This document shows positions 10,005 through 55,254 of a stretch of 64,000 bases of DNA, piece after piece. The notes beneath the pieces were generated by a model, which was given only the letters and a program-made list of their open reading frames with translations, did no database searches and was not told where the DNA came from. The position numbers and the translations under genes were made by a program. Location: the IMG/VR virus record IMGVR_UViG_3300044731_002337, positions 124,001 through 188,000 of that record. One strand, 5' to 3'. The first letter of the stretch is position 1; the number at the start of each line of letters is the position of its first letter.

Positions 10005-10560
10005 TTCTTTATTTTTATGTTATTGGGTGATATGGTTGTTCCACTTGCGTACCTATGTGCAATTCTTACATTTAAATGAAACCAGTTCTAATCTAGTGGC
10101 TATTTATGATCGAGTATTTCAAAAGTTACCTTTGATGGATGCTCAACTCTACATCACCTTTGTCATGGTACTCTTTTATGGGTGTGCGATATATGATATT
10201 TACAAACACAAGGAAAATTGGATAGTCGTATCAGATCACTATTTTTTATTAATTTCAATACGTATGATCATGATGAGCCTATTACCATTGAAGGCTTCGG
10301 ATCAGATGATCAGAGCAAGTGATGTATGGGATGTGTATACAGGGGCCTTGGTGAACGATTTATTCTTTTCTGGCCACGTAAGTTTAATTGCCTTGTTTTA
10401 TTTCCAGTTTGGGGAGCATTGGTATGGTTATTTGGTAATGGGAGTCGCAGTATCCATGGCCATGCTATTATGTCGTATGCATTATACCATTGATATCCTG
10501 GTAGCACCATTTATTAGTTTTGGGGTGGTGCATCTGCGAAAGTCTTGTTTTGGAGCATAG
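9997..10560 (+). CDS. Sphingomyelin/IPC-synthase-like PAP2_C membrane enzyme
   Basis: DLFFSGH and RMHYTIDILVA match the D3 and D4 catalytic motifs (H, H, D triad); multiple TM segments. Confidence 0.8.
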   Translation: MDISLFLCYWVIWLFHLRTYVQFLHLNETSSNLVAIYDRVFQKLPLMDAQLYITFVMVLFYGCAIYDIYKHKENWIVVSDHYFLLISIRMIMMSLLPLKASDQMIRASDVWDVYTGALVNDLFFSGHVSLIALFYFQFGEHWYGYLVMGVAVSMAMLLCRMHYTIDILVAPFISFGVVHLRKSCFGA

Positions 10561-13500
10561 ATAATGATTCAAGTGTATTCAAATCACTAGCGAATATTGC
10601 AAGTTTCTTATCCAAGTGAAGTTTGTTCTTCGTATCAATGGGTGGGAGGCATAAATTGAGGAATTGAGTGAATGCGGAAGTGGATAAATGTGCAGATAAA
10701 CCACAGCCTTTGATGCGTGAATCTTGATAGAGGTTTTGGATGTTGGAACTACTAAAATCTTTGACGACCCAGTTCATGATGTAAAAGTGAATGTGATTGG
10801 GGAGGTATGGGGAGCCAAATTGGAGGTGAATAAGGTAGTCTTTTGTAGCTACGGCGAGAAGATGACATGCCTTGTAAGTATCTTCTATGGTTGTGATGGT
10901 ATCTGAATCATAGGTACGATTTTGTCCTTCATAAAGTGAAAATTGTTTAAGAGGGATTTGTAAGGTCTTTTCAAGTAGTGTCTTGTGTTGAGAAATGAGG
11001 TTGATGATTTTGGCCATGACAACATTTGAATCCATGCCTACGACCACAGTGAGTACATGAGGTACCGTGTGAATCGTTACATGTCGTTGAAAGTTTCGTA
11101 TAGCTGTTTGCTCATCATCATCTTTAATGGGTGCAGTCACATCAACTTTGGGCTTATTATTGGTGATGGATTTTTCTAAGCTTTCTAAACGTTTTTGGAG
11201 AGCAGTTTGACCATTTCGTTGCGCATCAGCTAGGTCCTTCACATTTAAAGGTTCTTTGAGACCAGAAGTTTGTAATAATCGTGTGCTACGCTGTAAACTT
11301 GAATCATAAAGTTCTTGTAGATGAATGATTCGATCACGCTGATTACGTAATTGAATGGATTCATCTTTGACTTGTGCATTTATTTTATCTAAACGATCAC
11401 GTGTAATTTGATTGATCAGTTCATCGTCTTCAGCTTCATTGTCAAGTTGGATAACGATGGCCGGTGCTTTGGTGTCTAGATTTTCTTTCACTTGGGCTGC
11501 AGGGGCAATATCTTGTGTCTTTTGTATGAGGTCAACTTGGGTTAGGAGTGAATTGTGTCGATCTTTGAGTTCATCAATATCCTTGGGTGGATCCTTGGCA
11601 TGGATGAGTTCCTTAATTTGGTCCTGTGATTGACGAAGTTCTTTGACAATTGGTTTTAACCCATTCTCGGTTGTCGCTTCAGGTGCCTTGAGTTTTGCTG
11701 CTAATTTATCTTGTTGATCTCGAATTTGTTTGGGTTGTGGTGGTAGCATGAGTGAGTTGATACGTTCACGGGCGTCATTATATTTCAATGTGCATGCATC
11801 GATGGTGGTTTGGATGATAGTCGACGCCTTGGTTGGGTTTAATTCAAGATCATGGATACCCAACTCTTTGGCGGATCGAAGTTGGAGTAGAGTTTGAGTG
11901 ACAATGTGTTTCATTTGTTCACGAGCCCATTGACGATCAGTCTCTTTTGGGAAACGTTTAGGTAATTGAGAATCCAATAATTTACCCGTATCTTTTAATT
12001 GTTTCTCAATGAGTACAACCGCATCATTCAATTTATTCACCAATTCAGGTTCCTTTTTATTAACTTGTGATTCCAGTTCTTTTATTTTATTCTGTAATTG
12101 ATCTGTTTCCTTTTCATTGGACAAGAAACGATCCTGATACTTACGAAAGATTTGTAATTGTTCACCTTCTAGGGCACGTTTATCCTTAATGGCTTGATAA
12201 TCTGCTACTAAAATATTGTGCTGTTTTTGAGAAGCGATAATACGTTCTTCCAATTGTTTATTGAGAGCCAAAGCTTTCTCTAATTGATCTTGCCTGGATT
12301 CAGCGACTTGTTGGCGTTGTTCTAAATTGAGTACATGTTGTGCTTGACTAGCTGATTTCTTGTGACATGAATCTAGTTCATCGCGTATGGCTAAAATCTC
12401 TTGGTTCATTTGTTCGACATTGTCTGCTGATTTACAATGTTTAATTTTTTGTTTGTATTCCTGAAGCTCGTTTTCTAATTGTGACCGTTCTGCAGCGAGC
12501 ACTTTGGCCGTTTCTAATTGTTTAGCGACCTCGGCTTGAAGTTGCTTCGTAACGGTTTCACAAGTCATGGACGCCTCTTTGAGTTTTTGATTATCGGTTG
12601 CCATGGTCTTGAGACGTTCCAGCTCCAAACTTTGATTCTCAAACATGGCCTTTTTCATGTTGTACTCACTTTCCAATAGTTGATATTTGGTAGGGTCAGA
12701 GTGTGATACAAGTCGTTTGGTGAGTGTCTCGAGTTCTCGTTTTGCCTCCTTAAGTTGTGATTCCATTTCCTTCTTTTCGTTGGTGAGCTGTACAATAACC
12801 TGTGTAATCTTGGTGGTCTCTGGTTTGGTGGATTTCACAGGTGAAGTTGGATCAGTCAGTTTGGCCCGTAATTCTTCTAGACGTGAAATAGTCTCTGTTA
12901 TGGGTACTAACATGGGTTCATCTGCACGAATCGCCTTGACCTGTTCTGCTAATGAATGAATATGTTTCAGAAAGGCTCCATTTTTAGCGACACATGAAGT
13001 ACTGATATCATGGGCGAATCCAACGCGTTGTTCTACTTGTTGGTATTGAGTGTTCAGTTCATTCCAGCGTTTCTCCCAATCTGCTTCTTTCGCTTTCCAC
13101 GCCTTTTCATTGGCATCTTTCTCAGCAAGGATTCGTTTGACAGAAGAGTCTTTATCATCGATAAGCTTGGCAATAGAGGATTCCTTATCCGTCAAGATTT
13201 TTCGCAAGGTAACTTCTTTATCCTCGATAAGTTTCTTAATGGTTGAATCTTTGGAAAGGTTGGAAGCTTGATATTCGTCAGTTAGCTTTTTTATGGTGGA
13301 TTCACGTTCTTTGTGCACTTGATGTAGTTCTTGAGTAAGCTGTTTGATGCGTTGTTCTAATGTATAATATTGGGATTTAGCGTTTGCCAAGTTTTGTTTA
13401 TCAATAGGGGCATCATTGGTTAGGGTGGTAATCAATTCTAAAAGTGATGTCGTATCCTCATAAATGGTTTGTAATGATTGATGTTGGTCAATATAGGCAT

Positions 13501-13888
13501 TGTTTTGGTCCTTCAATTGATCATAAACTAGTTGAAGACGTGCAAGCTTAGTCTGATTATAATTAAATCGGTCAGTAACACGTGTTAGTTCAGCAGCGAC
13601 TTGATCACCTTGTTGAATAAATGTATTGATTTGAGTTTGTGTCTTGGATTTACAATCATCATTGGTACATGCAGCTAGTTCTTTGGTAAGACGATCACGT
13701 TGTTCTTGAAGTTGAAGACGTTGTTTGGTTAGGTCTTGACTTTGTAATTTCGCCTGGTTCATATCTTGGGTTAATTCATCTAATAGTTCTTTATAGTGTT
13801 GAATGATTTGTGTATTGGTTTCTGAACGGCTACGTAAAGAGGTATTATGTTGATTCAACTTTTCACGAATTCGTGTAAGTTCATTCAT
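10514..13888 (-). CDS. Large coiled-coil protein (about 1124 aa)
   Basis: Long heptad-rich Q/E/K/L sequence; likely start MNELTRI at 13888 after an A-run. Confidence 0.75.
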   Translation of the reverse strand: MNELTRIREKLNQHNTSLRSRSETNTQIIQHYKELLDELTQDMNQAKLQSQDLTKQRLQLQEQRDRLTKELAACTNDDCKSKTQTQINTFIQQGDQVAAELTRVTDRFNYNQTKLARLQLVYDQLKDQNNAYIDQHQSLQTIYEDTTSLLELITTLTNDAPIDKQNLANAKSQYYTLEQRIKQLTQELHQVHKERESTIKKLTDEYQASNLSKDSTIKKLIEDKEVTLRKILTDKESSIAKLIDDKDSSVKRILAEKDANEKAWKAKEADWEKRWNELNTQYQQVEQRVGFAHDISTSCVAKNGAFLKHIHSLAEQVKAIRADEPMLVPITETISRLEELRAKLTDPTSPVKSTKPETTKITQVIVQLTNEKKEMESQLKEAKRELETLTKRLVSHSDPTKYQLLESEYNMKKAMFENQSLELERLKTMATDNQKLKEASMTCETVTKQLQAEVAKQLETAKVLAAERSQLENELQEYKQKIKHCKSADNVEQMNQEILAIRDELDSCHKKSASQAQHVLNLEQRQQVAESRQDQLEKALALNKQLEERIIASQKQHNILVADYQAIKDKRALEGEQLQIFRKYQDRFLSNEKETDQLQNKIKELESQVNKKEPELVNKLNDAVVLIEKQLKDTGKLLDSQLPKRFPKETDRQWAREQMKHIVTQTLLQLRSAKELGIHDLELNPTKASTIIQTTIDACTLKYNDARERINSLMLPPQPKQIRDQQDKLAAKLKAPEATTENGLKPIVKELRQSQDQIKELIHAKDPPKDIDELKDRHNSLLTQVDLIQKTQDIAPAAQVKENLDTKAPAIVIQLDNEAEDDELINQITRDRLDKINAQVKDESIQLRNQRDRIIHLQELYDSSLQRSTRLLQTSGLKEPLNVKDLADAQRNGQTALQKRLESLEKSITNNKPKVDVTAPIKDDDEQTAIRNFQRHVTIHTVPHVLTVVVGMDSNVVMAKIINLISQHKTLLEKTLQIPLKQFSLYEGQNRTYDSDTITTIEDTYKACHLLAVATKDYLIHLQFGSPYLPNHIHFYIMNWVVKDFSSSNIQNLYQDSRIKGCGLSAHLSTSAFTQFLNLCLPPIDTKNKLHLDKKLAIFASDLNTLESLSMLQNKTFADAPPQN

Positions 13889-13933
13889 TTGCTCCTTTTT
13901 TTTTTTATTTATGACAGATAAAAGTAAAAAAAA

Positions 13934-14992
13934 ATGAAACATAGAGAGTTAACCCTTGTAACAGAAATCGATACTTTACATGATGTAATCTCACAAGGCG
14001 AAAAATCATGGATGGATCAATTGTCTAAGAAAGTAATCAATCCGCCTAAACTATGGCATAGAGTATATTATTATAAGCGTTTTTATCAACGATTTGCTGA
14101 AGCTCGTTATCGTTTTAATCATTTAATTTTACCAGTATTAGTGTGTAAATATCCTGATGCAACTAGACAAGTTCAATCGCTAGCTACTGCATTAGACATT
14201 TGGTATACGAATCCACAAGAGGACCGTTTCATATGTGATTTGATTCGAGCGATCAAGGTATGGTTACATGAAACACAAAAGAAGAGTGATGAGTATTTGC
14301 CAGTATTTCGAGAGTTGCGGAGGCAATTTGTGGTGGAAATATTGGTGAATAGGGATGTGATGATGGTAAAAAATAATATACATGAATTGATGATGTATTC
14401 TACTTTATTATGGTGTTCTCGAGGAGAGTCTCAATCTGAGATGGAATATAATCGTGGATTACCACATGAAGAGATGGCATCTGATGTACAAGATATATTG
14501 CGCCAGGTAAGGGAATATTGTCGAAAGTTAAGGTTCAAGAGGCCTCAAGAAGGGATTGCTATAAAGCATATGAGTCCATGTGAGCAATGGCATGAATTGG
14601 TATTGTATATCATGTCCTTATTTGAAATGAATCATATCATTGGTAAAGATGCATATGTCACAAGATATGAAAATGTGGATTGGATTTATATGAAGGATTG
14701 TAAAGAGATTGAATCGATTATTGAACATCCAAGTTTTTGGTTGAAGAAAAAGTTTGATATGTCATCTCCCATTGAGTTAAAGTTTAATTATTCGCAATGG
14801 TTACAGTCGAATAAGAATACGGGTTCATTGGATACTTTACCTATTCCATCTTCATTTTCTTATCATGTTAAAAATGATTGGACGGTTCAAGCACAAAAAG
14901 ATTCCCATTTGATTATAACGTCTCTGGCGATAGGCATGTGGATAGTTTACCGATTGAACCATTGGGTTATTGCTCACAGTATTCAACTATAA
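13934..14992 (+). CDS. Hypothetical protein with possible C-terminal TM
   Basis: 352 aa ORF. Confidence 0.7.
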   Translation: MKHRELTLVTEIDTLHDVISQGEKSWMDQLSKKVINPPKLWHRVYYYKRFYQRFAEARYRFNHLILPVLVCKYPDATRQVQSLATALDIWYTNPQEDRFICDLIRAIKVWLHETQKKSDEYLPVFRELRRQFVVEILVNRDVMMVKNNIHELMMYSTLLWCSRGESQSEMEYNRGLPHEEMASDVQDILRQVREYCRKLRFKRPQEGIAIKHMSPCEQWHELVLYIMSLFEMNHIIGKDAYVTRYENVDWIYMKDCKEIESIIEHPSFWLKKKFDMSSPIELKFNYSQWLQSNKNTGSLDTLPIPSSFSYHVKNDWTVQAQKDSHLIITSLAIGMWIVYRLNHWVIAHSIQL

Positions 14993-22779: not shown

Positions 22780-25700
22780 TTATGATGAGCAAGTATTGCA
22801 AACAACTGGTGTAGTAAAATTGAATTTGGTGGGCTTATCAATGGTGCGGAAATAGTAGCTGGCTGTTTTGAGGCCAAGATTCCAAGCAAAGCACCAGTAC
22901 TTGACAACTTCGATCGCCATATTCTCTCCACGTTTCATGTAGACATTGAGACTGATACTTTGGTCGACAAAACGAGAGCGATCGGCAGCCATGAGAGTAA
23001 TTTGGGCAAGTGGGATATCTACAATGGATCGGTAACGTTTCTTAATGTAATCCGGAATGGAAGCAATGTCGGTGAGTGATCCATTATTCGCTAGAATTTC
23101 ATCGTGAACAGGAATGGTAGATTTGGCATCAAATTTCCAAAGACCTGCTTCTTTGAGATCTCGTACCAGGTATTTGTTGAAGACATTGTATTCTCCAGTG
23201 TTCATGTATCGTTTGAAGCTACAGGCCAGGGCAGGTTCAAAGCATTCAAAGTTTCCTAAAATGATGGAAGTACCTGCAGTGGGCATATGAGCCATTAACA
23301 GGGAGTTGAGCATTTTGTTGGGTTTGGTCTTGATATCATGACGTAATTGGTCCCAGTTCCATCCGACACTTGTAGTAATATAGTCATGATGGGGTCTCTT
23401 TTCATAAATCTTTTGAGCCTGATTGTATTTGTCCCATAAATCTTGTTGTAAAATACCGGATTCAATGGGTGATCCAGCGATACTAGGATAATTGCCCCGT
23501 TCTTGAGCCAGGTCATGGGAACCTTTTAGGGCGGCATAATACATGGTTTCAGCGATTTGATAATTGAGACGTTGTGCTTCTTTTGAATCAAAGTCGAGTT
23601 TGAGGATCATAAACACATCTGCGAGTCCTTGAATGCCAATGCCAATAGGTCGATGTCTCATGTTGGAACGCCTTGTAGATTCCAGGGGATAAAAATTGAG
23701 GTCAATGACTTGGTTCATATGGTACACTAGATTATATACCACTTCATACAATTCTTGAAAATCGTATTGATCATCATGGATAAATGCCTTGAGGGAAACG
23801 GAGCACAAATTACAAACCGCGGTTTCTTCTGGTGAAGAGTATTCAATGATTTCTGTGCATAGATTAGATGATTTGATGGTACCGAGATTTTTTTGGTTGG
23901 ATTTGTGGTTACAGTGATCTTTGAATAGGATGTAAGGTCCGCCGGATTCGACTTGTGATTTGACAATGGCGAGGACAAACTCTCGAATGGGAACTTGTGC
24001 TTCATAGAGCCCTTGTGATTCATACTGGAGGTAGAGTTGTTCAAAAGCTTCACCATGCACGTCATCTAGCCCTCGACACTTTTGAGGGTTCATGAGGGAC
24101 CATACTTGTGGTTGATTGTGTTGATAATCTAGAATGATACGTTTCATGAACAAGTCGTTAACCCATAGAGCATAGAATAGGTCAGTAGCTGAAATGGTAT
24201 TGGCGGTCAAGGGGGATTTCAATTCTAAGAATTCCAAAACATCTGCATGCCATGGTTCTAGATAGACTGCAATGCTTCCTTTACGTTTACCACCACCATT
24301 ATGAGCGACCATACAGGATGTGACATAGGATGGGTCGGAGGACCTTTCCATTTCCAGGTCGAAGCAGTCATCAATGGTGGGTGGGCTGTGAATTACATTG
24401 TGAATAGGTAGACAGAGGTAGTTTTGGACTTGTATGCATGGTGTGAGGCGGCGACCATCTTGATCCTTGGGTGGCCATATCATACGGTATTCATTAGGAT
24501 AAATCTCCTCAATCAGAGCAAAAGAATATCCAAGTCGGTTAGCACAATATTCCAACGAATGCTTCTTTTGGGGGGAAACATTCTTTAACGTGGGACCTTG
24601 AAGTTCAAGACCTTCCATGAAATCGGCGACTTGGTCTAAGGGGGCGAATAGAATGGAGGCAGGAATGTCTTGTCGATTACATTGAAGTAGACCCATTAAT
24701 TGACCTTCAGGGATAATGATTTCCGTAGTGGAAAGACAGCGAACAGATACAATGGAAGATAACCAGGTTCGATCAATGTCTGGGCTTAGGAGGTGAAAGG
24801 TGATGAGTCCTTCTTGACATTGCCAGTTCATATCTGCGGTGATGAGGCCCAAGAGTTTTAAGAGATTTGAGTCGACATCAGGGATTCGTTTTTGGAGTTC
24901 AATGGTGTTGCAAATAGCGAGCCAGTGTTTGCGGGGATCGATTTCGTGGATGGTGGTGTAAAAGGGGAGAGCTCTTGATCCAAAGGTGTTGTCAATGACG
25001 AGAATAGGGTGAGAATCGGTGATGCCATGTGATACACGGTGATTAGGGAAAACTAAATGGTGGAATTGGAGTGATTTCTTGGTGGAAATAATTTTCTGAA
25101 TATGGTGAAAGTCTCCAAAACGGTTCATGACAAGATCATTGACTTGTAAGGATTGAATTTTGCGCCAACCAGTGGAAGTCATGACCCGGGTATCACCTTG
25201 AAAGCATTGGTCGACATAGCATGCTACAGAGTTATACACTTTGAGCATGGGTCCTACACCTCCAGTGACTCCATTAGTACCCTTGATATACGAATTCTTG
25301 CTACGGGTATTGTGGATGTTGATGCCAATGCCACCCGAGTGTTTGGAGATGATGCTACATTGCTTCCATCGATCAGCAATACCTTCAATGGAATCATCCC
25401 CAGCATATAAGAGAAAACATGAACTCATTTGGGGATGCATGGTTCCCGCGTTAAAGAGAGTAGGTGTAGCCATGATACATTTGCCCAGAGATAAATAATG
25501 ATACAACTGTATAGCTCTCTTGGTATTCATAGGGTTCAGGGCAATCGCTATTCTCATCCACATAAATTGTGGTTCCTCCAAAGGTACTGACACCATGATA
25601 TGCTGCCCATTATGTTCTACTCGCTTGTAAGTGTTGAGAAGGTATTTGCCATTAATAAGTTGGGTAATCGCCGCACAGTCAAATATAATGTTTCGATCAT

Positions 25701-26124
25701 GGTCAATTGTGGCTTCAATGAGGTCCATGTCAGGAATGTGTTCAAATGATTCGTGTAAGAGTGGTGACAACTCTCCCGTGCGTGGATTCACATTAGCGCG
25801 TGCTAGTCGAACATATTCTTTAAACGAATTTGGGGTGGATTTCTGGAGATTGGAGACTATAATTTGGCCGGCAAAGAGGTTATTGTCTGCAAAATAAGTA
25901 TCATGGGCGGCAACATTCGCAGATATAGTATCGAGTTCAGAGGTGGAAATGCCATCTGTAATTTGGTCAACTGTAGCACGGCATATTTTGAAAATTGACA
26001 CATCAATGGGACGTTTTAAGATACGGGTCATATGATCACGTATCGAGTTAAGACGTGCAGTAATTCGTTGAGGATCAATGGGTTCTTTTGTTCCATCACG
26101 GGTAGTAACACATCGAGGTTCCAT
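22780..26124 (-). CDS. nrdA: Ribonucleotide reductase large (alpha/R1) subunit, class Ia, containing an intein
   Basis: N-terminal ATP cone, ATPTLFNAG, MSSCFLL, GGIG, KGTNG, YVDQ/GGGKRKG, LEPWH, SNLCTEI, RPIGIGIQG, MPTAGTS, DQSIS, C-terminal CxxC. Confidence 0.97.
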   Translation of the reverse strand: MEPRCVTTRDGTKEPIDPQRITARLNSIRDHMTRILKRPIDVSIFKICRATVDQITDGISTSELDTISANVAAHDTYFADNNLFAGQIIVSNLQKSTPNSFKEYVRLARANVNPRTGELSPLLHESFEHIPDMDLIEATIDHDRNIIFDCAAITQLINGKYLLNTYKRVEHNGQHIMVSVPLEEPQFMWMRIAIALNPMNTKRAIQLYHYLSLGKCIMATPTLFNAGTMHPQMSSCFLLYAGDDSIEGIADRWKQCSIISKHSGGIGINIHNTRSKNSYIKGTNGVTGGVGPMLKVYNSVACYVDQCFQGDTRVMTSTGWRKIQSLQVNDLVMNRFGDFHHIQKIISTKKSLQFHHLVFPNHRVSHGITDSHPILVIDNTFGSRALPFYTTIHEIDPRKHWLAICNTIELQKRIPDVDSNLLKLLGLITADMNWQCQEGLITFHLLSPDIDRTWLSSIVSVRCLSTTEIIIPEGQLMGLLQCNRQDIPASILFAPLDQVADFMEGLELQGPTLKNVSPQKKHSLEYCANRLGYSFALIEEIYPNEYRMIWPPKDQDGRRLTPCIQVQNYLCLPIHNVIHSPPTIDDCFDLEMERSSDPSYVTSCMVAHNGGGKRKGSIAVYLEPWHADVLEFLELKSPLTANTISATDLFYALWVNDLFMKRIILDYQHNQPQVWSLMNPQKCRGLDDVHGEAFEQLYLQYESQGLYEAQVPIREFVLAIVKSQVESGGPYILFKDHCNHKSNQKNLGTIKSSNLCTEIIEYSSPEETAVCNLCSVSLKAFIHDDQYDFQELYEVVYNLVYHMNQVIDLNFYPLESTRRSNMRHRPIGIGIQGLADVFMILKLDFDSKEAQRLNYQIAETMYYAALKGSHDLAQERGNYPSIAGSPIESGILQQDLWDKYNQAQKIYEKRPHHDYITTSVGWNWDQLRHDIKTKPNKMLNSLLMAHMPTAGTSIILGNFECFEPALACSFKRYMNTGEYNVFNKYLVRDLKEAGLWKFDAKSTIPVHDEILANNGSLTDIASIPDYIKKRYRSIVDIPLAQITLMAADRSRFVDQSISLNVYMKRGENMAIEVVKYWCFAWNLGLKTASYYFRTIDKPTKFNFTTPVVCNTCSS
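24298..25206 (-). mobile_element. Intein (303 aa) with degenerate LAGLIDADG domain; C-extein +1 residue is Gly
   Basis: Starts CFQGDTRVMT, ends CFDLEM...CMVAHN; removal gives seamless YVDQ-GGGKRKGS; blocks LLGLITADM and FMEGLELQG are eroded LAGLIDADG motifs. Confidence 0.92.
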
Positions 26125-30582: not shown

Positions 30583-31623
30583 GTTGTAATGCATCTCAGA
30601 CATTGGTCCATGCGTGTCGATTCATGGAATGTTTAATGGAAAAAAATGGTGTTAGTAAACAAGAGGTGAAGCATATGTACTCATCTGGACAAGAATGTGC
30701 ATTCTTATATCATCCCAAGATTAGTGTGATATTGTTTCGCCCTGATGATCCTACAACAACAACTTATTTAAAAATGAGTGTGTTAGATCCAGTATTCATT
30801 CCTACCGATACAGTGATTGAACAAGGGAAGAAGAAAACAGAAATACAAACCTCCAACTTAACTGAATCAGTGTGGAAACATTTTAGGGTATTTATTCTTT
30901 TTTTTTTGTCTTTCTCTTGTTTGTTTGTTTAATGTTATGATAGGCTACGTATCCTCTTGTGAAACGATGGATTATGGTCTCCTCAGACATTAATACATTT
31001 ACCAATACTCTATTACTAGAACTAATGTGGATGTCTGAATCAATGTCTATGCAACACTTTAAGTACATTGAATTGGGAGATCCTCGAATTATTACTGAAC
31101 ACAAGTTTCAACCATTGAGTGTGGAAAGAGTGGATAAGGCTCCAACTGAAAACTGTCGACAAATTCTAGTGCATGATATCTTTGCACGATTTTATGGAGC
31201 ACAAGTAGGGCATGTATTGAAATGTCAAGGTATCCATAGACAATCTGGTGAACAAACAGATTATTTACAGGTATATTTTTTTTCGTTTACATGTACTTTA
31301 CAGCTTATACTATGTTTTAGGTATCTTATATTCATTACATTAAAGGAAATAAGTTGAAACCAGCAAAACTTCCAGAACAAGCAAAACAGGAAAGTATTGT
31401 GTTGGAAGAAGAGGAAGAGGAGGATGAGGAACTGGAAGAAGAAGAAGAAGAAGAGGAGGAAGATGAAATAGAGGAAGTACAAGTAGAGGAAGAAACATCA
31501 GAGTCTGAAACTGAATCGGAAGAGGAATCGGAATCCGAGTCTGAGGATGAAGAGGAAGATGAAGATGATTCTGAATCGGATGAGGAGGACGAAGAGGATG
31601 ATGATGATGATGATGAGCAATAA
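30579..31623 (+). CDS. rpb5: RNA polymerase subunit RPB5 homolog with acidic C-terminal tail; three exons join(30579..30887,30944..31270,31321..31623)
   Basis: RPB5 C-domain ITEHKFQP...QILVHDIFARFYGAQVGHVLKC...YLQV; three track ORFs join in frame (939 nt) after removing two GT-AG introns. Confidence 0.8.
30888..30943 (+). other. Spliceosomal-type intron 1 of RPB5 (56 nt, phase 0)
   Basis: AGG|GTATTT...T-rich...TTTAAT...GATAG|GCT; splicing joins WKHFR to ATYPLVKRWIM in the frame of ORF 30959. Confidence 0.8.
31271..31320 (+). other. Spliceosomal-type intron 2 of RPB5 (50 nt, phase 0)
   Basis: CAG|GTATAT...TTTTAG|GTA; joins DYLQ to VSYIHYIKGNKLKPAK in the frame of acidic ORF 31354. Confidence 0.7.
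31405..31616 (+). repeat. Poly-Glu/Asp low-complexity coding repeat
   Basis: GAA/GAG/GAT runs. Confidence 0.9.
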
Positions 31624-36507: not shown

Positions 36508-37830
36508 TTAGGAATATAAATCCGGAAGTATTGGAATCGTATTGTACAAAGTAATAAAAAGTGCAAAGGTAAATAGTGTAGTTACTATAATCGTAAACCC
36601 ATTTGAATTGGTTTTTTCTGCTTCTGCTTCTTCTTGTGTTGATGATAAAAGTGAGGAAGTTATAGTTTTCAATTCATGTAGTATTTCATCGCATCGATGG
36701 GCTACCTCTTCGATTGAACAAGAAGTTACCTGCTCATTGATAGTTGTATTTATGGTATCCATACAGGTATTGTGAAGAGTGAGTATGACTCCATGTTGCG
36801 CCTTGAGACATTGTGTCAGTTCATTGTAGTGACGGGTACATTGGGCTAATATAGTTTGCTGTAATGCGTCAATGTGTCGTTGTTGTATTTGATTATTGTC
36901 TTGAAGATCCATTTGCCCCATAATTCGTTGAACAGTATTGTCATGATATAAAGTCATTTGTTGTTGCAACTCTGAACTAATGAAATGTTGGAGTTCTTGA
37001 TAATCTTTTTCGAGTCCATCGCAAAGACGTGTACCCAATTCCTCAGTTGTATTCTGCATAGCTGTGATAATATCCTCCTTACATGTAACACCATGATCCA
37101 TAAACGTATTGTGGAGCTTATCACTCTCTAACATAAATGTATTCTGAAGCAAAGTCGTCACATGATGGTGAAATTTGTCAAGTTGTCGTTTGTCATGTAA
37201 AAACCATTCTTCCTTGGAAGGTAAATGGGCAAATAATTCTTCCTTCGAAGGTAAATGGGTAAACAATTCTTCCTTGGTGGGTAAGCTGCGTGACAGATCA
37301 TCTTTAGAAGGTAAATGGCGAAATATTTCATCACGATAGGGTAATTGGCGAATCACATCTTCCTTTGTGGGCAGGTGTTTTACAATATCTTGTTTGGTTG
37401 GTAAACGGTTTTGTATTGTTGCTTCTGTTTTGGATAAGAATTCTTCCTTGGTTGGTAATAGGTGGTGAGAGGGAAGGTGAGCCATTATTTCATCCCGTGT
37501 TGGAAAATGATTAAGAATTTCTTGCTTCATTGGTAGTTGACTCACTAGCTCTTCCTTGGAGGGTAATCGATTAAGTATCTCTTCTCTGGTAGGTAAATGA
37601 GAGGTGAATTCTAGCTTGGAGGGTAATCGATTAAGTATCTCTTCTCTGGTAGGTAAACGTTGTAATAACTCTTCCTTGGTAGGTTCATCTTTGGAAAGGT
37701 GGTGTTTCTTAGGCTTGGGATGTTTCTTATGTTCATGGCAAGGATGTTGAGAGAGACAAGAGGTTGGACTAGGTAGAATAAATGATTCATTCGTACCATG
37801 GTTGTTAGGTAGTTGCTTGTGTTTATTCAT
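36508..37830 (-). CDS. Membrane-anchored protein with tandem 11-aa LP(T/S)KEE repeats
   Basis: More than a dozen LP(T/S)(K/R)(E/D)E-type units; C-terminal TM FTIIVTTLFTFALFITLY. Confidence 0.75.
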   Translation of the reverse strand: MNKHKQLPNNHGTNESFILPSPTSCLSQHPCHEHKKHPKPKKHHLSKDEPTKEELLQRLPTREEILNRLPSKLEFTSHLPTREEILNRLPSKEELVSQLPMKQEILNHFPTRDEIMAHLPSHHLLPTKEEFLSKTEATIQNRLPTKQDIVKHLPTKEDVIRQLPYRDEIFRHLPSKDDLSRSLPTKEELFTHLPSKEELFAHLPSKEEWFLHDKRQLDKFHHHVTTLLQNTFMLESDKLHNTFMDHGVTCKEDIITAMQNTTEELGTRLCDGLEKDYQELQHFISSELQQQMTLYHDNTVQRIMGQMDLQDNNQIQQRHIDALQQTILAQCTRHYNELTQCLKAQHGVILTLHNTCMDTINTTINEQVTSCSIEEVAHRCDEILHELKTITSSLLSSTQEEAEAEKTNSNGFTIIVTTLFTFALFITLYNTIPILPDLYS

Positions 37831-38028: not shown

Positions 38029-38980
38029 TCATTGGATTACGGGAAAGGGAAGTAGTTCATTCACAGAAATATTTTCAGCAATGGCGATAATGGTGTCTGT
38101 AACTTGTTTCCATGTAAAAGGTAGTGATTGTGAGGGACCAGAAATGATCCATTGTGCATCACGGTATTCGCATGCCACAACAGCATTCTTGGGGAGAGGA
38201 TAAGGACAAATAGCGGCCGAAATGATGACATTATCTTTGGATTTGAGTAGATAGTCGCCTTGATAGAAGCGGTAGTATTGTACTGTCGAAGGAGTTCCAT
38301 CAGGCCAAGGTAATTCTCGAATCGATTCAAATGGTTGAATAGTACAATAAATGCGATGTGATCGTAATCGTAATTGGGGTATTACTTTAGATCCGTATGA
38401 TGATGAAGAAGAAGAAGAAGAAGATAATGCTTCAGATGAAGTATCCATGAAATCCAAGGCTTCAATAGGTAGCATGTAGGTAAATTTTAGAATATGACTC
38501 ATTTCCACTAGTGGTTTGACATGAAGTCCAAAGGGAATTTCAGGATGATGCACTACCTTATTATACAATGTGGGGTAAAGTGATGATTTCACTACGCAAG
38601 GGGATACAGAGATGGAGGTAGTTGAAGCAGTAGGACATTTCGAGATCATTTGAATGGCTTGAATGGCTAATTCCCATCGTTGATCGTACCTGAGATGTTT
38701 GGCAGGGTTTCCACACATCATATAACAATCCATAATCGTAAAGCAAAATCCTTGGTCGTTAAGTTGAACCATTTCTCCATCGAGTACGGTTCCAGCAAAT
38801 AATGGGATAGGTAGTTTGGAAGGCATATGTTTCAGTTTGGTGGTCTTCTTTTGTTGATCCATGAGAAAGAGTTGTATGCAGTTCTTGTATGTGGTGAATA
38901 ATAATAGCCCGCGGATACCATTTAAGTAAGGTACCATGACATAACGTTGAGGTTGGAATTCGAGTTTCTTGGGTCGAAAG
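38029..38980 (-). other. Degenerate mRNA-capping guanylyltransferase plus OB domain fused to RPB1
   Basis: YVMVPYLNGIR (motif I KxDG changed to YLNG), TVLDGEMV (III), FTIMDCYMMCG (IIIa), YDQRW, VVACEY...W, TIIAIAENISVNELL. Confidence 0.75.
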
Positions 38981-41900
38981 GGGATTACATCTTGAATCAT
39001 TTGAAAGTGATAGCCACTACCAAGACCCATATTCTTATTGCACATGGCAGCAGCTGCAATAGTATTCCCTGGATCCCACCTTCCCATATCTACATTTTCC
39101 ATAACGTGTCTAGATGACTCTTCAAACGAGGCTTGCTGCATAGGTGCAATACGTTTGGCAGCTTCATTCTTCTTGTATCCTTCATGTATACCAGTCATGG
39201 TCATGTATCGAGCCATGAGTTCCAAGTGTCGTGCATCAGTAGAATCTCCCATGACTAACACGAATTCATGGGTCAACACTTGGGTTGTGGCATAAACGCC
39301 CATAAACTTTTGGGTATCGCCGGTATGAGTGCTGTACGATTGCTGAACATCGACTAATGGGTGCGTATTCCAAATTGAAAAATCAGATTGGTCCGTAATG
39401 CATACCCAGCGATTTGAAGCTTGTTGTTCAATAATATACTTGGAGATGCCATCCAATTTACCCCTCACAATGGTTTGGTGAAAGATATTGTAAGCGACGC
39501 CGTACAGGGCATGTGTGGTTGGATTCTTGACCTTGCACTTGATTTGTCTCAAGGCGAAAGTCCAAATGCCCACGGAAGGTGTTAAACGAATACAAAATAG
39601 GGTCTTGTCTACTTTGTGAATCGCGGAAATGGGAATTTGGATGGTATGGTGTAATGCGAGAATGATATTGTAGTCTTGTACCAAATAATATGCTTTGAGC
39701 TTCGGGTCAATATGGAGGCGGATAGTCATACTTGATTCATCAATCTTAGGGTAGTCAGAGAGGATTTCAGAGAGATATACAGTTCTCCAGGTCATGGCCG
39801 TATAATGGACTTCAGCTTCCGTGACATGAGGTAGAAAGACAATATTCATCATGGCTAGGCTATTATTGGCATCAATCAAGTTATTCAATTTGTTGACTCC
39901 TGTAACTTGCGTATTCTTTTTCCCAGAGGAGTGAGGCGACTTTAAATTACCTTGTGTGTATACTTCTCCCACACTATGAGTCGCATTCATTCCAATAGCT
40001 TCTCCTGGCAAAATGGTTCTTCTTTGTATCGTATGGTAAATCAATCGAAGTAACTTGTACCAGGCAACACTAGACAACTTCCATACCACCAATACATTAT
40101 GAGGGCAGCACCACACACGTAATAAAACATGAAGCTTGTGGTGTTGGGCAGGAACAAGTCTCTCCTTGACCATACTTTGCCAGATATAGGTAAACGACGT
40201 AATGATTTCGGTTTCCATAAGATCAGGTGATGAAGTATAAGTGGTGGCTTGTTGAAAGAGATGCTTGATATGAAAGGGAGATTTGAATGTCAAGTCTTGA
40301 TCCTTGATTTTATCCCAAAGTAACCATGACTCACGATAGAATACATGATGATGATGATTAGGCCAAAGTTCTAGAGTTGGCGGTGTAATTGTTTCCCATA
40401 CCAAGTATTGAGGGTCAAGAGAATCACCTCCATAAGTAAACCAAACGGTTGGACCAGGTTTATGGATATCTTCTTTGCGAAAGGCATGTTGTCTTCGATT
40501 GCCAGAATAACTGTCTACTGCATGGCCAAAAGTGTCTGCAATAATACCCATATTACAATAGGCCATCTTCTTCTCCAAGTAGCCTGATTGTGAAGTACCC
40601 TTGATCTTGTTGATCACTGATTCCGTGGTAGGTTGTGCTTGGGTCATTAGATCATGAAAAGTGAGACCCATAGCATAAGGATGTTTGATAAAGCCATGCG
40701 CTACAAGTGATTTGTCGTGAGGGTGGAAATGGCTAGTCACATTAGGAATTCGTTCATGTGTGAGATACGCTTGTCCCACAACACCCATCATTTGAGATAA
40801 GGATGCCCAATTTGCCTTGGTGCCACTTTGAATCATAGCCAAGTATCCATTGTGTAACGTATTTCGATCCCTTGCTGTTACCAACTCTTCAATCCGATCT
40901 TGAATCGACTTGGTGTAAAACTGAATGTGCTGTCCAACTACATCTTCAGGTTGCTCCTGCATATTTTGAAGCTTGTGATAATTGGGACATGAATCCGCAT
41001 CTTCCCAATACATTTGGTGATAGCTACAAGAGTGTCCACGCATGTCTAGATATTCTTGGGTGATTAGATAGCCTTCATACAGGAAATCCATGGCTTCATC
41101 GAGGGAATGGTACATGATGATATCTCTAAGGACGCCATTGAGAACTTTTTCCGTAAACACGGTATGAATGTGAATGGAGCTAGGTAGGATACAATGCATC
41201 ACTTGTCTCCCGGTCCATAATTGGCGAGGTTTCCAAACTGCAGGTGGAGGTATGGTGATGAACCGAGTCACATGTCCTAGTAACACCGAGACTTGATCCT
41301 TGGTCAAAAATGTATCTTCATGGGTCAATAAAAAAGCGCCAATCACTGGATTTTGACTGAATTTAATCCATAGTCCTCCATCTTTCATGGTGTGAAACTT
41401 GACCGCCATAATCTCCATCACCTCTGCCCGAGCTTCAATGGTTTGAGGAATGTGTACACTTAGTTCATCGCCATCACAATCCGCATTAAAAGGTAAAAAA
41501 ACACTCACGTGAAGATTAATGACAAACGAATTGGGAATCACTTTGACTTTGAATCCCATAGTCGATCCACGATGGAGTGTTGGTGCTCGATTCACAATCA
41601 CCCAATCATCCTCCAAAATGTGACGACGAACATAAGCCACGTCATGCACGTTAATGTCGCGACGGTTATCATAGTATTCCAAATCAATGGTGCGTCCATC
41701 CTTCATTTGCATGGAATTGGCGCCAGGATAGTGATGTGGGCCATTCAAAATCCATTTGTGAGCTTGGTTCATGTTGAAGGAAGATACGGGGACGTTAATG
41801 GTCAGTCCCATACATGTGGATTGCGGGAGGCCACAGTAAGTAGGGTGAATCCATGTACAACCTTCCAATACAAGTCGTGCATAATGATATTTTCGCCACG

Positions 41901-43109
41901 CCACAATAAAGCCTTGCATACGGCTACTTTGTTTCGATTTGCTAGTCTTCTTAAACTTGGTATCCACTGAATTGGGGGTTTTACCATATTGGGCATTCTT
42001 GGGGATTAGTTTGCGATACTTTTCAAAGTGGAATGCAGAGATTTGGTTTTGGAGGTTTCGCCAGGCACATTGATTGGTCACGTTGCCACAAGACGCTTCA
42101 TTGGAAAGTTTACATTTGCTCAGTTTCTGGTTAATGAGTTGAAGCTGGGCCCGGTATTGTTGCCGTTGTTGAATATTGAGTTGTTTTCGTTCTTCGCTGG
42201 TTAAGGATTCTTTTTGAAAGCAAACTTTAAAATCTGGATGAATGAATCCCTTGTATAGATATTGGGAAAGAATAATGGGGTCCTTGGATTGTTGCAATTT
42301 CATTTCGAGTAAAAGTTTGCTTTGGAGGACATTTTTGAGCATCTTGGTCCAATCATTGGGGTATTGTTTAGAGCCATTTTTGGTAGGGAAAGTACTATTA
42401 GGTCTAGTGGTGAGTGCCGGGACAGCTAGAGCCGAAAACATTCGAGCCTTGGGTAAGTTGTATTGTCCAAGTCCCATAATATGCATCATTTGTTCATTCT
42501 TCGAAATGTCCTCCAAGAGTTTTTGAATTTCAAATGGACCAAACGAAATGGGCTTCCATGATGGATTGGATTGGTAAAGTTGAAAATCAGTCTTGGAAAG
42601 TGTTACAACTCCCCGTATAATATTATCATGACCCGATTCTGTTGTCCATTTGATATAGGATTTACCACATTCACATGCCCTGAAGAAACGAGTATATTTA
42701 AGTAACGTATTGAGTCGTTTTTCAGAGGGTAGTTGAAGAACTTTCTCGCACATATGGGAAGTAATGCGGAGGCGTTGACAATAAAAGCAAACTAGATTGA
42801 GTATTTTCAAAAGGGTTGACATGGCGCCTACATGGAAACAGGGAATAGGTAATTCCATATGTCCAGTATGTCCAGGACAATTATGGGTTGTCTCTCCACA
42901 TTGCTCACATAATGAATCCCATGATTTACATCCCAAAACACCTACAAGAAGAAAAGTAAAGAAAGATCAAAGGGCGAAAAAAAAAATGTACCTGAAGTAA
43001 GATCTGTATTGGTTTTGATTTCTAATACACTTTGTTTACGAACACGATCCGAGTCAATAAGGAAACATTGTAATGCATCTACTTCACGTAATGGTGGAAG
43101 TGAATCCAT
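38029..43109 (-). CDS. rpb1: RNA polymerase largest subunit (RPB1) with fused C-terminal guanylyltransferase-like domain; exons complement(join(38029..42941,42992..43109))
   Basis: CEQC...CPGHTGH, CFYC, NRAPTLH, FNADCDGDE, GTSQSGYLEKK, PGEAIG, EVYTQGNLKSPHSSG, LGSGYHF; exon 1 supplies RVRKQSVLEI; spliced length 5031 nt is in frame; an upstream in-frame ATG at 43178 is possible. Confidence 0.93.
42942..42991 (-). other. Spliceosomal-type intron in RPB1 (50 nt, phase 1)
   Basis: CAG|GTACAT...polypyrimidine...TTGTAG|GTG; joins TDLTSG to VLGCKSWDSLCEQC. Confidence 0.85.
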
Positions 43110-54573: not shown

Positions 54574-55254
54574 ATGACGTCTTTGGTTTTGTTGCAGGCA
54601 AAGTTTTTGTTTCAGAAATTCAAGTTGTATGATATGAATAGTGTACAGAGAGCTTTATGGTATTATAAGGATACAATGAAGGGGGAAAGTAAAATGACAA
54701 CTCGAAAGTTTTTACATGCGATGTATAAATTGATACCTCATCATTTGCAGTGGGTAGGAGAGGCGAGTAAAATAGATAGTATAGTACATCGATTTATGAA
54801 TTATCAGAACCGTTTGCCTCGATGTGGGGTAATTTTATTATGTCAGAATAAGGTATTGGTGTTGAGGTCATTGTATGGGAGGAATTTGATGTTTCCAATG
54901 GGGAAGCAATTGAGGAATGAATCAAGTCACAAGTGTGCTGAAAGGGAATGTGTAGAAGAAACTGGATTGCAAGTTTATTTGGGGGAACATAGTGAACGGG
55001 TTGAGTTAAAGATGAATGGTCATACACCACGATACTTATATATTTACAAATTAGAATGTAATATTAATTTATTAAGGATTTCACCGCAGACACATTATGA
55101 AGTAAGTAATTATCGTTGGGTAGATTGGGAATGGTTTAATGAAGACAAACCATTTCGTGGATTTACAGGTCAAGGTTGGAAGTGGCTTATTCACTATCTT
55201 CATCATCGAATATATCCTCCCCTTTTGCTAACGCATGTTCCACCAGTACTGTGA
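54574..55254 (+). CDS. Nudix hydrolase, Dcp2-like mRNA decapping enzyme
   Basis: YQNRLPRCGVILL (Dcp2-like) and Nudix box FPMGKQ...CAERECVEETGL. Confidence 0.85.
   Translation: MTSLVLLQAKFLFQKFKLYDMNSVQRALWYYKDTMKGESKMTTRKFLHAMYKLIPHHLQWVGEASKIDSIVHRFMNYQNRLPRCGVILLCQNKVLVLRSLYGRNLMFPMGKQLRNESSHKCAERECVEETGLQVYLGEHSERVELKMNGHTPRYLYIYKLECNINLLRISPQTHYEVSNYRWVDWEWFNEDKPFRGFTGQGWKWLIHYLHHRIYPPLLLTHVPPVL

Follow-up and report, generated by a model that had tools for sequence, protein, structure and literature searches.

The DNA examined here, which we call the window, is a stretch of 64,000 nucleotides from a giant-virus-like metagenomic contig. The same sequence is deposited in NCBI as assembly GCA_041443045.1 (299,086 bp) and in IMG/VR as IMGVR_UViG_3300044731_002337 (294,773 bp). 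According to Pfam, the genes of the window comprise RPB1, RPB2, both subunits of the ribonucleotide reductase, an SNF2 helicase, a Dcp2-like Nudix protein and a Ser/Thr kinase, and an Erv1/Alr gene is found on the adjacent locus, just past the window edge. Comparison with PDB places both RPB1 and RPB2 far from their ASFV and vaccinia counterparts, and the best PDB match of RPB1 is the Rpb1 subunit of Pol II (260 bits). The Dcp2-like protein (54574-55254, plus strand; NUDIX E=2e-7, Dcp2 box A E=6e-5) probably acts in decapping, as do enzymes of poxviruses and ASFV, and its presence suggests that caps matter in the system of this virus.

Several other features of the window can be mentioned here. 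The large subunit of the ribonucleotide reductase (22780-26124, minus strand, 1114 aa) has its barrel domain matched by Pfam in two stretches and carries a weak Hint-domain match at residues 307-354; an intein is probable here. Immediately 3' of RPB1, an ORF at 36508-37830 (minus strand) has a weak match to a homing-endonuclease-associated repeat (E=3.5e-5, below cut-off); relatives have at this position a gene of similar size without any Pfam match. Finally, although both strands carry genes, the GC skew, (G-C)/(G+C), is positive in all 2-kb bins of the window (0.01 to 0.37), so that the asymmetry of composition concerns the strand as a whole.

The RPB1 gene and its introns

The main RPB1 ORF runs on the minus strand from 42936 to a stop codon at 38029-38031 and encodes 1635 aa. 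All five Pfam RPB1 domains are found in it above their cut-offs (E=2e-39 to 1e-10), and its metal-binding catalytic motif, of the NADFDGD type, reads NADCDGD. The gene itself begins further upstream, with a short exon of 39 codons and one base (43109..42992, ATG at 43109-43107). This exon was found by tblastn with the N-termini of orthologues: it is 64-83% identical to those of P0002, P0003 and P0009, which belong to the three sister lineages of the window RPB1 (P0002/P0007, P0003 and P0009), and it lies in a different frame from that of the main ORF. Together with the window, these sisters form what we call the dead clade, for reasons of active-site sequence given below. Exon 1 is separated from exon 2 by a 50-nt, T-rich GT...AG intron of spliceosomal type (42942..42991, minus strand). 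Its removal joins ...DLTSG to VLGCK, where the uninterrupted orthologues have ...DLTSGILGCK, and so restores the orthologue sequence. The whole gene thus spans 38029-43109.

Two further T-rich GT...AG elements, both on the plus strand, are found at 30888-30943 and 31271-31320, which brings to three the number of such elements in the window, all of 50-56 nt. They split the homologue of a conserved 322-aa gene that lies beside an M43 peptidase gene. Excising the three elements restores the frames that are seen uninterrupted in related contigs (L124 and L002). All three look like spliceosomal introns gained in the lineage of the window, which suggests that at least some transcripts of this virus pass through the host nucleus or otherwise access the host spliceosome.

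The polymerase core encoded by exon 2 (38998..42941, minus strand), which is delimited by the Pfam domains, the NADCDGD motif and the PDB match, ends with LGSGYHFQM. Beyond this motif, 322 further codons are read without interruption before the stop is reached, slightly more than the 310 or so first estimated. The core is followed by an 18-aa connector, IQDV...QPQR (38944..38997, minus strand; AlphaFold pLDDT 73-88), that leads to the first strand of a nucleotidyltransferase-like domain, the tail module starting about 26 residues past the core. The translation of the window RPB1 holds no heptad-repeat CTD of the Pol II type; a guanylyltransferase-like module follows the core directly and stands in its place, as had been proposed.

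A capping-enzyme module in the place of the CTD

AlphaFold models the tail with confidence (pLDDT 87.8, pTM 0.82) as two domains. The nucleotidyltransferase-like domain covers tail residues 15-185 (38431..38943, minus strand) and is supported jointly by the model, by Foldseek and by HMM and PDB profile matches. It is followed by an OB-like domain with a C-terminal helix (38032..38373, minus strand), in which the model places strands at residues 205-284 and the helix at 292-304. Disorder is confined to a Ser-rich loop, residues 190-202, where pLDDT falls below 50.

Foldseek, which aligns the model over both domains, gives as top match the capping enzyme of PBCV-1 (1CKM, E=3.9e-14, 325 columns), followed by Cgt1, Pce1 and human RNGTT, and each of the best 19 PDB matches is a capping guanylyltransferase whose alignment takes in the nucleotidyltransferase as well as the OB domain. 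Complexes of Pol II with capping enzyme of the 8P4A type are also among the matches, as are the cap-binding domains of snurportin-1 (1XK5, 3GJX and others, E=6e-6 to 3e-4), while the guanylyltransferase of vaccinia D1 is only a weak match (4CKB, E=1.2e-3). In BFVD, the matches are generic capping enzymes of giant viruses, at 10-18% identity. We also considered whether the tail could be a DNA or RNA ligase, and rejected this identity, since ligases appear only behind the 19 capping enzymes, at E of 1e-5 or weaker.

Sequence profiles agree with the structural comparison. The Pfam family that had been named for this check, PF01331 (mRNA_cap_enzyme), does match the tail (E=1.9e-4), but with 21.8 bits it stays below its gathering cut-off of 29.6. 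A profile made of the four dead-clade tails alone matches 1CKM at E=1.4e-5, and a profile of the wider family matches the PBCV-1, Pce1, Cgt1, Ceg1 and human enzymes at E=3e-29 to 8e-15. Conversely, HMMs built without any dead-clade sequence match the tail at E=5e-47 (A4) and 1.4e-43 (A6). The resemblance to capping enzymes is far beyond chance, and the tail is a nucleotidyltransferase and OB module of the capping guanylyltransferase kind, in line with the original prediction. These enzymes belong to the covalent nucleotidyltransferase superfamily and are represented in Pfam by PF01331 and PF03919.

A widespread family of fused polymerases

When the tail was run with HMMER, exhaustively, against 1.84 billion cluster representatives, 52 matches were obtained, about half of which are proteins of 1586-1925 aa with the match at their C-terminus. 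The reciprocal view is given by a search with the polymerase core, whose nearest RPB1 relatives nearly all carry a precomputed PF01331 match, and gene calls on the contigs of these relatives put all the RPB1 domains and the capping domain in one product. In total, about 35 metagenomic RPB1 protein clusters (1586-2017 aa) carry the fused domain with all six motifs intact in the HMM-alignment motif table, namely KxDGxR, DGE/D, FDC, DGxxFT, KxKP and RxRxKxxN. In every fused relative, window included, some 25-40 residues separate the position of motif I from the G-[ST]-G motif that closes the core. The RPB1-guanylyltransferase fusion is therefore not unique to the window, which holds a degenerate member of a widespread family.

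This recurrence also bears on the most trivial explanation of the fusion, namely that RPB1 and an adjacent capping-like gene were joined by a sequencing error, or that an intron or stop went unrecognised between them. In its favour, the 5' part of RPB1 is indeed interrupted by an intron, of 50 nt. At the junction, however, there is no stop or change of frame, the connector is conserved within the dead clade, and roughly 40 protein clusters, obtained from different samples with different assemblers, have a junction of identical architecture. At least five independent assemblies show the ORF at full length and free of frameshifts, and the fusion is seen in independent assemblies from NCBI, JGI, ENA and Logan, so the continuous frame is not an assembly artefact; we give this explanation practically no credit.

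Assemblies from ENA, Logan, NCBI and JGI contain the intact fusion family, but two of its signature peptides did not retrieve it from IMG/VR: only two dead-clade contigs were found there, and the matches to the peptides were only small stand-alone guanylyltransferases, none of them adjoining RPB1. A separate family of stand-alone capping enzymes (P0035, P0045, P0060, P0061, P0064 and P0065) is made of proteins of 470-650 aa with a conserved N-terminal extension of about 200 aa and a motif I reading KTNG, with Asn for Asp; its members lie on small metagenomic contigs with adjoining ankyrin-repeat genes. As to the surroundings of the fused genes, two lineages with an intact fusion have a HECT-domain gene of about 920 aa directly upstream of RPB1 and divergently oriented (L001 6347-9121 and L127 7124-9865), and no HECT-domain gene adjoins RPB1 in the dead clade.

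What the active site has lost and what it has kept

The three sister lineages are 55-59% identical to the window in the tail. We compared the dead clade with 31 intact relatives, taking the 57 positions at which 80% or more of the latter agree: 29 of these are kept in the dead clade and 28 are lost. The presumed nucleotide and phosphate contacts of the motifs follow the published work on PBCV-1 and Ceg1.

The original prediction had found the lysine that forms the covalent bond with GMP replaced by Tyr, and the same codon (38926-38928) is indeed found within a degenerate motif I that reads VPYLNGIR in the alignment (38911..38934, minus strand), where Asp is also replaced by Asn. The lysine is present in 31/31 intact relatives, and its position is occupied by Y, C, Y and H in the four lineages of the dead clade. 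Motifs I, III and IIIa had all been listed as present. This is right for motif III, GTVLDGE (38773..38793, minus strand), which is intact in the alignment, and mostly right for motif IIIa, FTIMDC (38725..38742, minus strand), which according to the motif table keeps its Asp-Cys and has Met as the residue preceding the Asp (mostly Phe in intact relatives, M/M/T/T/I in the dead clade), but motif I, as YLNG, is degenerate. The absence of motif VI stands, its residues R, K and N being replaced by S, S and F in the OB-like domain of the window, and to this have to be added the loss of motifs IV and V and that of the Arg that follows motif I. At the place of motif V (KxKP in intact relatives), the window has the Ser-rich, low-confidence loop (38380..38418, minus strand), as seen in the pLDDT values, alignment A2 and the motif table; the run of Ser is specific to the window lineage.

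Overall, eleven residues that are conserved in 30-31 of the 31 intact relatives are lost: K20, D22, R44, D175, G176, K198, K200, E271, R285, K287 and N290. Among the replacements are D175E, G176A, K198G, R285S, K287S and N290F, all at positions that are invariant (31/31) in the intact relatives. For K200, which is likewise invariant there, the window aligns a Lys inside the Ser-rich loop, and the three sister lineages are gapped. The loss of motifs I, IV, V and VI, and of the Arg after motif I, extends to all dead-clade lineages. What they keep is motif III, two residues of motif I (Gly and Arg), the Asp-Cys of motif IIIa, the lysine of VKP and a tryptophan of the OB domain, as well as a family-specific block after motif IIIa, CGN...LRYDQR.E.A, which is found in all four lineages. 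They also have a conserved basic stretch of their own, K..KLKHMPSKLP.

Since the nucleophilic lysine and ten further conserved residues of the active site are replaced, canonical lysyl-GMP chemistry can be excluded for the window module, as far as residues tell. It could still be asked whether the module is an enzyme that works with a non-canonical nucleophile or chemistry, as a nucleotidyl group could conceivably be borne by Tyr or His and motif III is intact. This we consider very improbable: the position of the lysine varies among close relatives, so that no substitute nucleophile is conserved, and the phosphate-holding motifs IV, V and VI are all gone.

A second possibility is that the module has turned into a ligand-binding domain, which would no longer transfer GMP and would still bind GTP, a cap or a 5' triphosphate end. 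The match to the cap-binding domains of snurportin-1 points this way, as do the kept Glu of motif III, the invariant Lys of VKP and the basic stretch of the dead clade. On the other hand, the Arg after motif I, the residue before the Asp of motif IIIa and motifs IV, V and VI are replaced, and the canonical pocket is unlikely to work. Most of the residues that line the GTP site in intact relatives being replaced, a working GTP pocket in the dead-clade module is unlikely, and the nucleotide binding that had been suggested as a possible role loses ground accordingly. Ligand binding in the broad sense is an unlikely reading of the module, though a more probable one than non-canonical catalysis.

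Direction of change and selection

The direction of change can be read from a maximum-likelihood tree for which the tails were cut off and only the polymerase cores used; this tree is unrooted and has several long branches. In it, the four dead lineages group together with an SH-aLRT of 100. P0067, whose motifs are intact, is the sister of the dead clade (support 100), inside the fused radiation. With the dead clade nested in this way, its inactivation is, on the sequences, to be read as secondary. This would hold for any root outside the dead clade and its stem, and a regain of six motifs is not plausible.

Decay is also seen elsewhere in the family. P0068 and P0056 have degenerate motifs, P0069 has exchanged the Lys for Arg, and P0079 is a 1445-aa protein with only a truncated remnant of the guanylyltransferase; the changes in degenerate lineages include D to E in motif I, K to M and K to R. 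These four cases show independent decay, and they suggest that some genomes can do without the catalytic function, perhaps through the presence of another capping enzyme.

Such losses could mean that the module is a functionless relic on its way to deletion. The tail does evolve faster than the core, with 57% identity to P0009 against 78%, and the remnant in P0079 and the degenerate motifs in P0056 and P0068 illustrate how decay can go further. However, the close pair P0002/P0007, where dS is unsaturated (0.21), gives a dN/dS of 0.040 over the 308 codons of the tail, against 0.016 for the core; this estimate comes from that pair only, the pairs of the window with its relatives having been set aside because their dS is saturated. 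The dead domain is thus under strong purifying selection. Within the four dead-clade lineages, the nucleotidyltransferase half, with a mean identity of 67%, is better conserved than the OB half, with 47%. The frame is kept at full length in all the assemblies counted above, the tail still has 29 of the 57 family-conserved residues, and its fold prediction is a confident one. Taken together, the dN/dS of 0.04 and this conservation speak for a maintained pseudo-enzyme and not for a relic, a reading to which we assign very little weight. The proposal of a pseudo-enzyme domain therefore holds, with a variable residue at the place of the lysine in a domain that selection preserves. The whole would apparently be a family of self-capping viral polymerases, from which the dead clade derived by secondary inactivation under continued selection.

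The search for a separate capping enzyme

A separate, intact capping enzyme in the same genome had been raised as a point to check. Within about 76 kb of the genome of about 299 kb, no second guanylyltransferase or capping enzyme was found. Pfam found none among 47 ORFs (40 of the window and 7 of the adjacent locus L126), and neither did four guanylyltransferase and capping-enzyme HMMs with which we scanned six-frame ORFs from three sources: the window, the adjoining 9.6 kb on its right side and the loci of relatives. Scanning IMG/VR gave no match on the contig of the window with a stand-alone guanylyltransferase profile, and none among the best 80 of 543 matches with a trifunctional capping-enzyme profile; a protein search aimed at this contig found no second capping enzyme either. 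The 1142-aa ORF at 10514-13942 was considered as a candidate divergent capping enzyme and obtained no support from Pfam or from the guanylyltransferase HMMs.

A probable built-in platform at the RNA exit

In cellular Pol II, the linker of the CTD leaves Rpb1 beside the RNA exit channel, and it is there that the capping enzyme binds. In the fused family, a module of about 320 residues is joined to the polymerase core, through a connector that has 18 residues in the window, at what would be the exit point of this linker. In the intact relatives, a guanylyltransferase on such a short tether would meet each nascent 5' end, and judging from their motifs, the polymerases of these relatives most probably guanylylate their own transcripts. 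In the dead clade, the module would be unable to make the enzyme-GMP intermediate, and yet it is kept by strong purifying selection. Most likely, it would then serve as a structural component of the polymerase, one without catalytic activity: tethered at the RNA exit, it would form a fixed platform that could hold or guide the nascent 5' end, recruit the capping activity that is present, or do both. The recruited enzyme might be a separate viral one encoded elsewhere in the genome, or the nuclear enzyme of the host. We favour this reading, that of an inactivated capping module kept as a non-catalytic platform of RPB1 at the RNA exit, with a probability of roughly 0.6.

We also put forward, more tentatively and at a little under even odds, a broader scenario. 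A group of giant viruses that seems not to have been described would have made a self-capping polymerase by placing a guanylyltransferase of the cellular or PBCV type, instead of a CTD, on the C-terminus of RPB1; in the subclade of the window, this enzyme would now be a non-catalytic module under selection, and the introns of spliceosomal type acquired by the window lineage may mark a shift towards host nuclear RNA processing.

The interest of the finding lies in the different ways in which capping can be coupled to transcription. Cells achieve this coupling by recruiting their capping enzymes to the phosphorylated CTD, and poxviruses and ASFV do so through separate capping enzymes that dock on the polymerase. 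A covalent fusion of RPB1 and guanylyltransferase that occurs in nature would represent a third, hard-wired solution, which to our knowledge has so far existed only as an idea of engineering (C3P3). The original prediction knew of no described fusion of this type, and we found none published in a full-text literature search, beyond whose reach most subscription journals lie. The giant-virus capping enzyme has been described as a separate three-domain protein (PMC3493329). The family context makes the finding more interesting than a lone odd fusion would be. The family offers a simple system in which to ask how near the RNA exit a guanylyltransferase is required to be, and it pairs apparently active forms of the module with inactive ones: secondary inactivation is clean in at least one case, and several other lineages are degenerate. 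It thereby amounts to a natural experiment on the change from enzyme to pseudo-enzyme. The family can also show what a polymerase devoid of a CTD needs from its capping module beyond catalysis, and the fused domain can serve as a marker for a group of giant viruses that the IMG/VR scan barely recovered.

Comparison with known systems

The closest known systems are the capping enzymes of PBCV-1 (A103R, 1CKM), Cgt1, Pce1, Ceg1 and RNGTT, which have the same nucleotidyltransferase and OB fold as the tail and are its best profile and structure matches. The intact fused relatives share all six motifs with these viral and cellular guanylyltransferases. The latter are free-standing, with some 60-80 residues before the Lys of motif I, whereas the window module is part of RPB1 and has lost its catalytic residues.

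Inactive domains related to capping are known in other contexts. Snurportin-1 has a capping-enzyme-like fold, is catalytically inactive and binds the m3G cap; it therefore resembles the tail as an inactive nucleotidyltransferase fold put to another use (1XK5). It differs from it in having the nucleotidyltransferase half only, in being an adaptor of nuclear import and in showing no detectable sequence relationship. In vaccinia, the D12 partner of D1 is an inactive methyltransferase-like subunit. D1 and D12 are separate polypeptides, in contrast to the covalent RPB1 module of the window. In the co-transcriptional capping complex, the D1/D12 capping enzyme is positioned at the RNA exit of the viral multisubunit polymerase (PMC10881513).

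The engineered C3P3 system consists of a capping enzyme tethered to a phage RNA polymerase (PMC10908868). It shares with the intact fused relatives the physical coupling of capping to the transcribing polymerase, and it differs from the fused family in being artificial and in using a single-subunit polymerase; its capping enzyme is active.

The nearest precedent for the dead module comes from ASFV, where the C-terminal domain of vRPB7 is a vestigial 2'-O-methyltransferase-like domain located in the stalk of the viral RNA polymerase and proposed to be a dock for the capping enzyme (PMC10881513). Like the tail of the window, it has a capping-related fold, has lost its cofactor and substrate sites and is fused to a polymerase subunit. 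Unlike it, the subunit is RPB7 and not RPB1, the fold is that of a methyltransferase and not of a guanylyltransferase, and the virus belongs to a different group. As a vestigial capping-related domain that would act as a docking site, it supports the reading of the dead module as a non-catalytic platform at the RNA exit.
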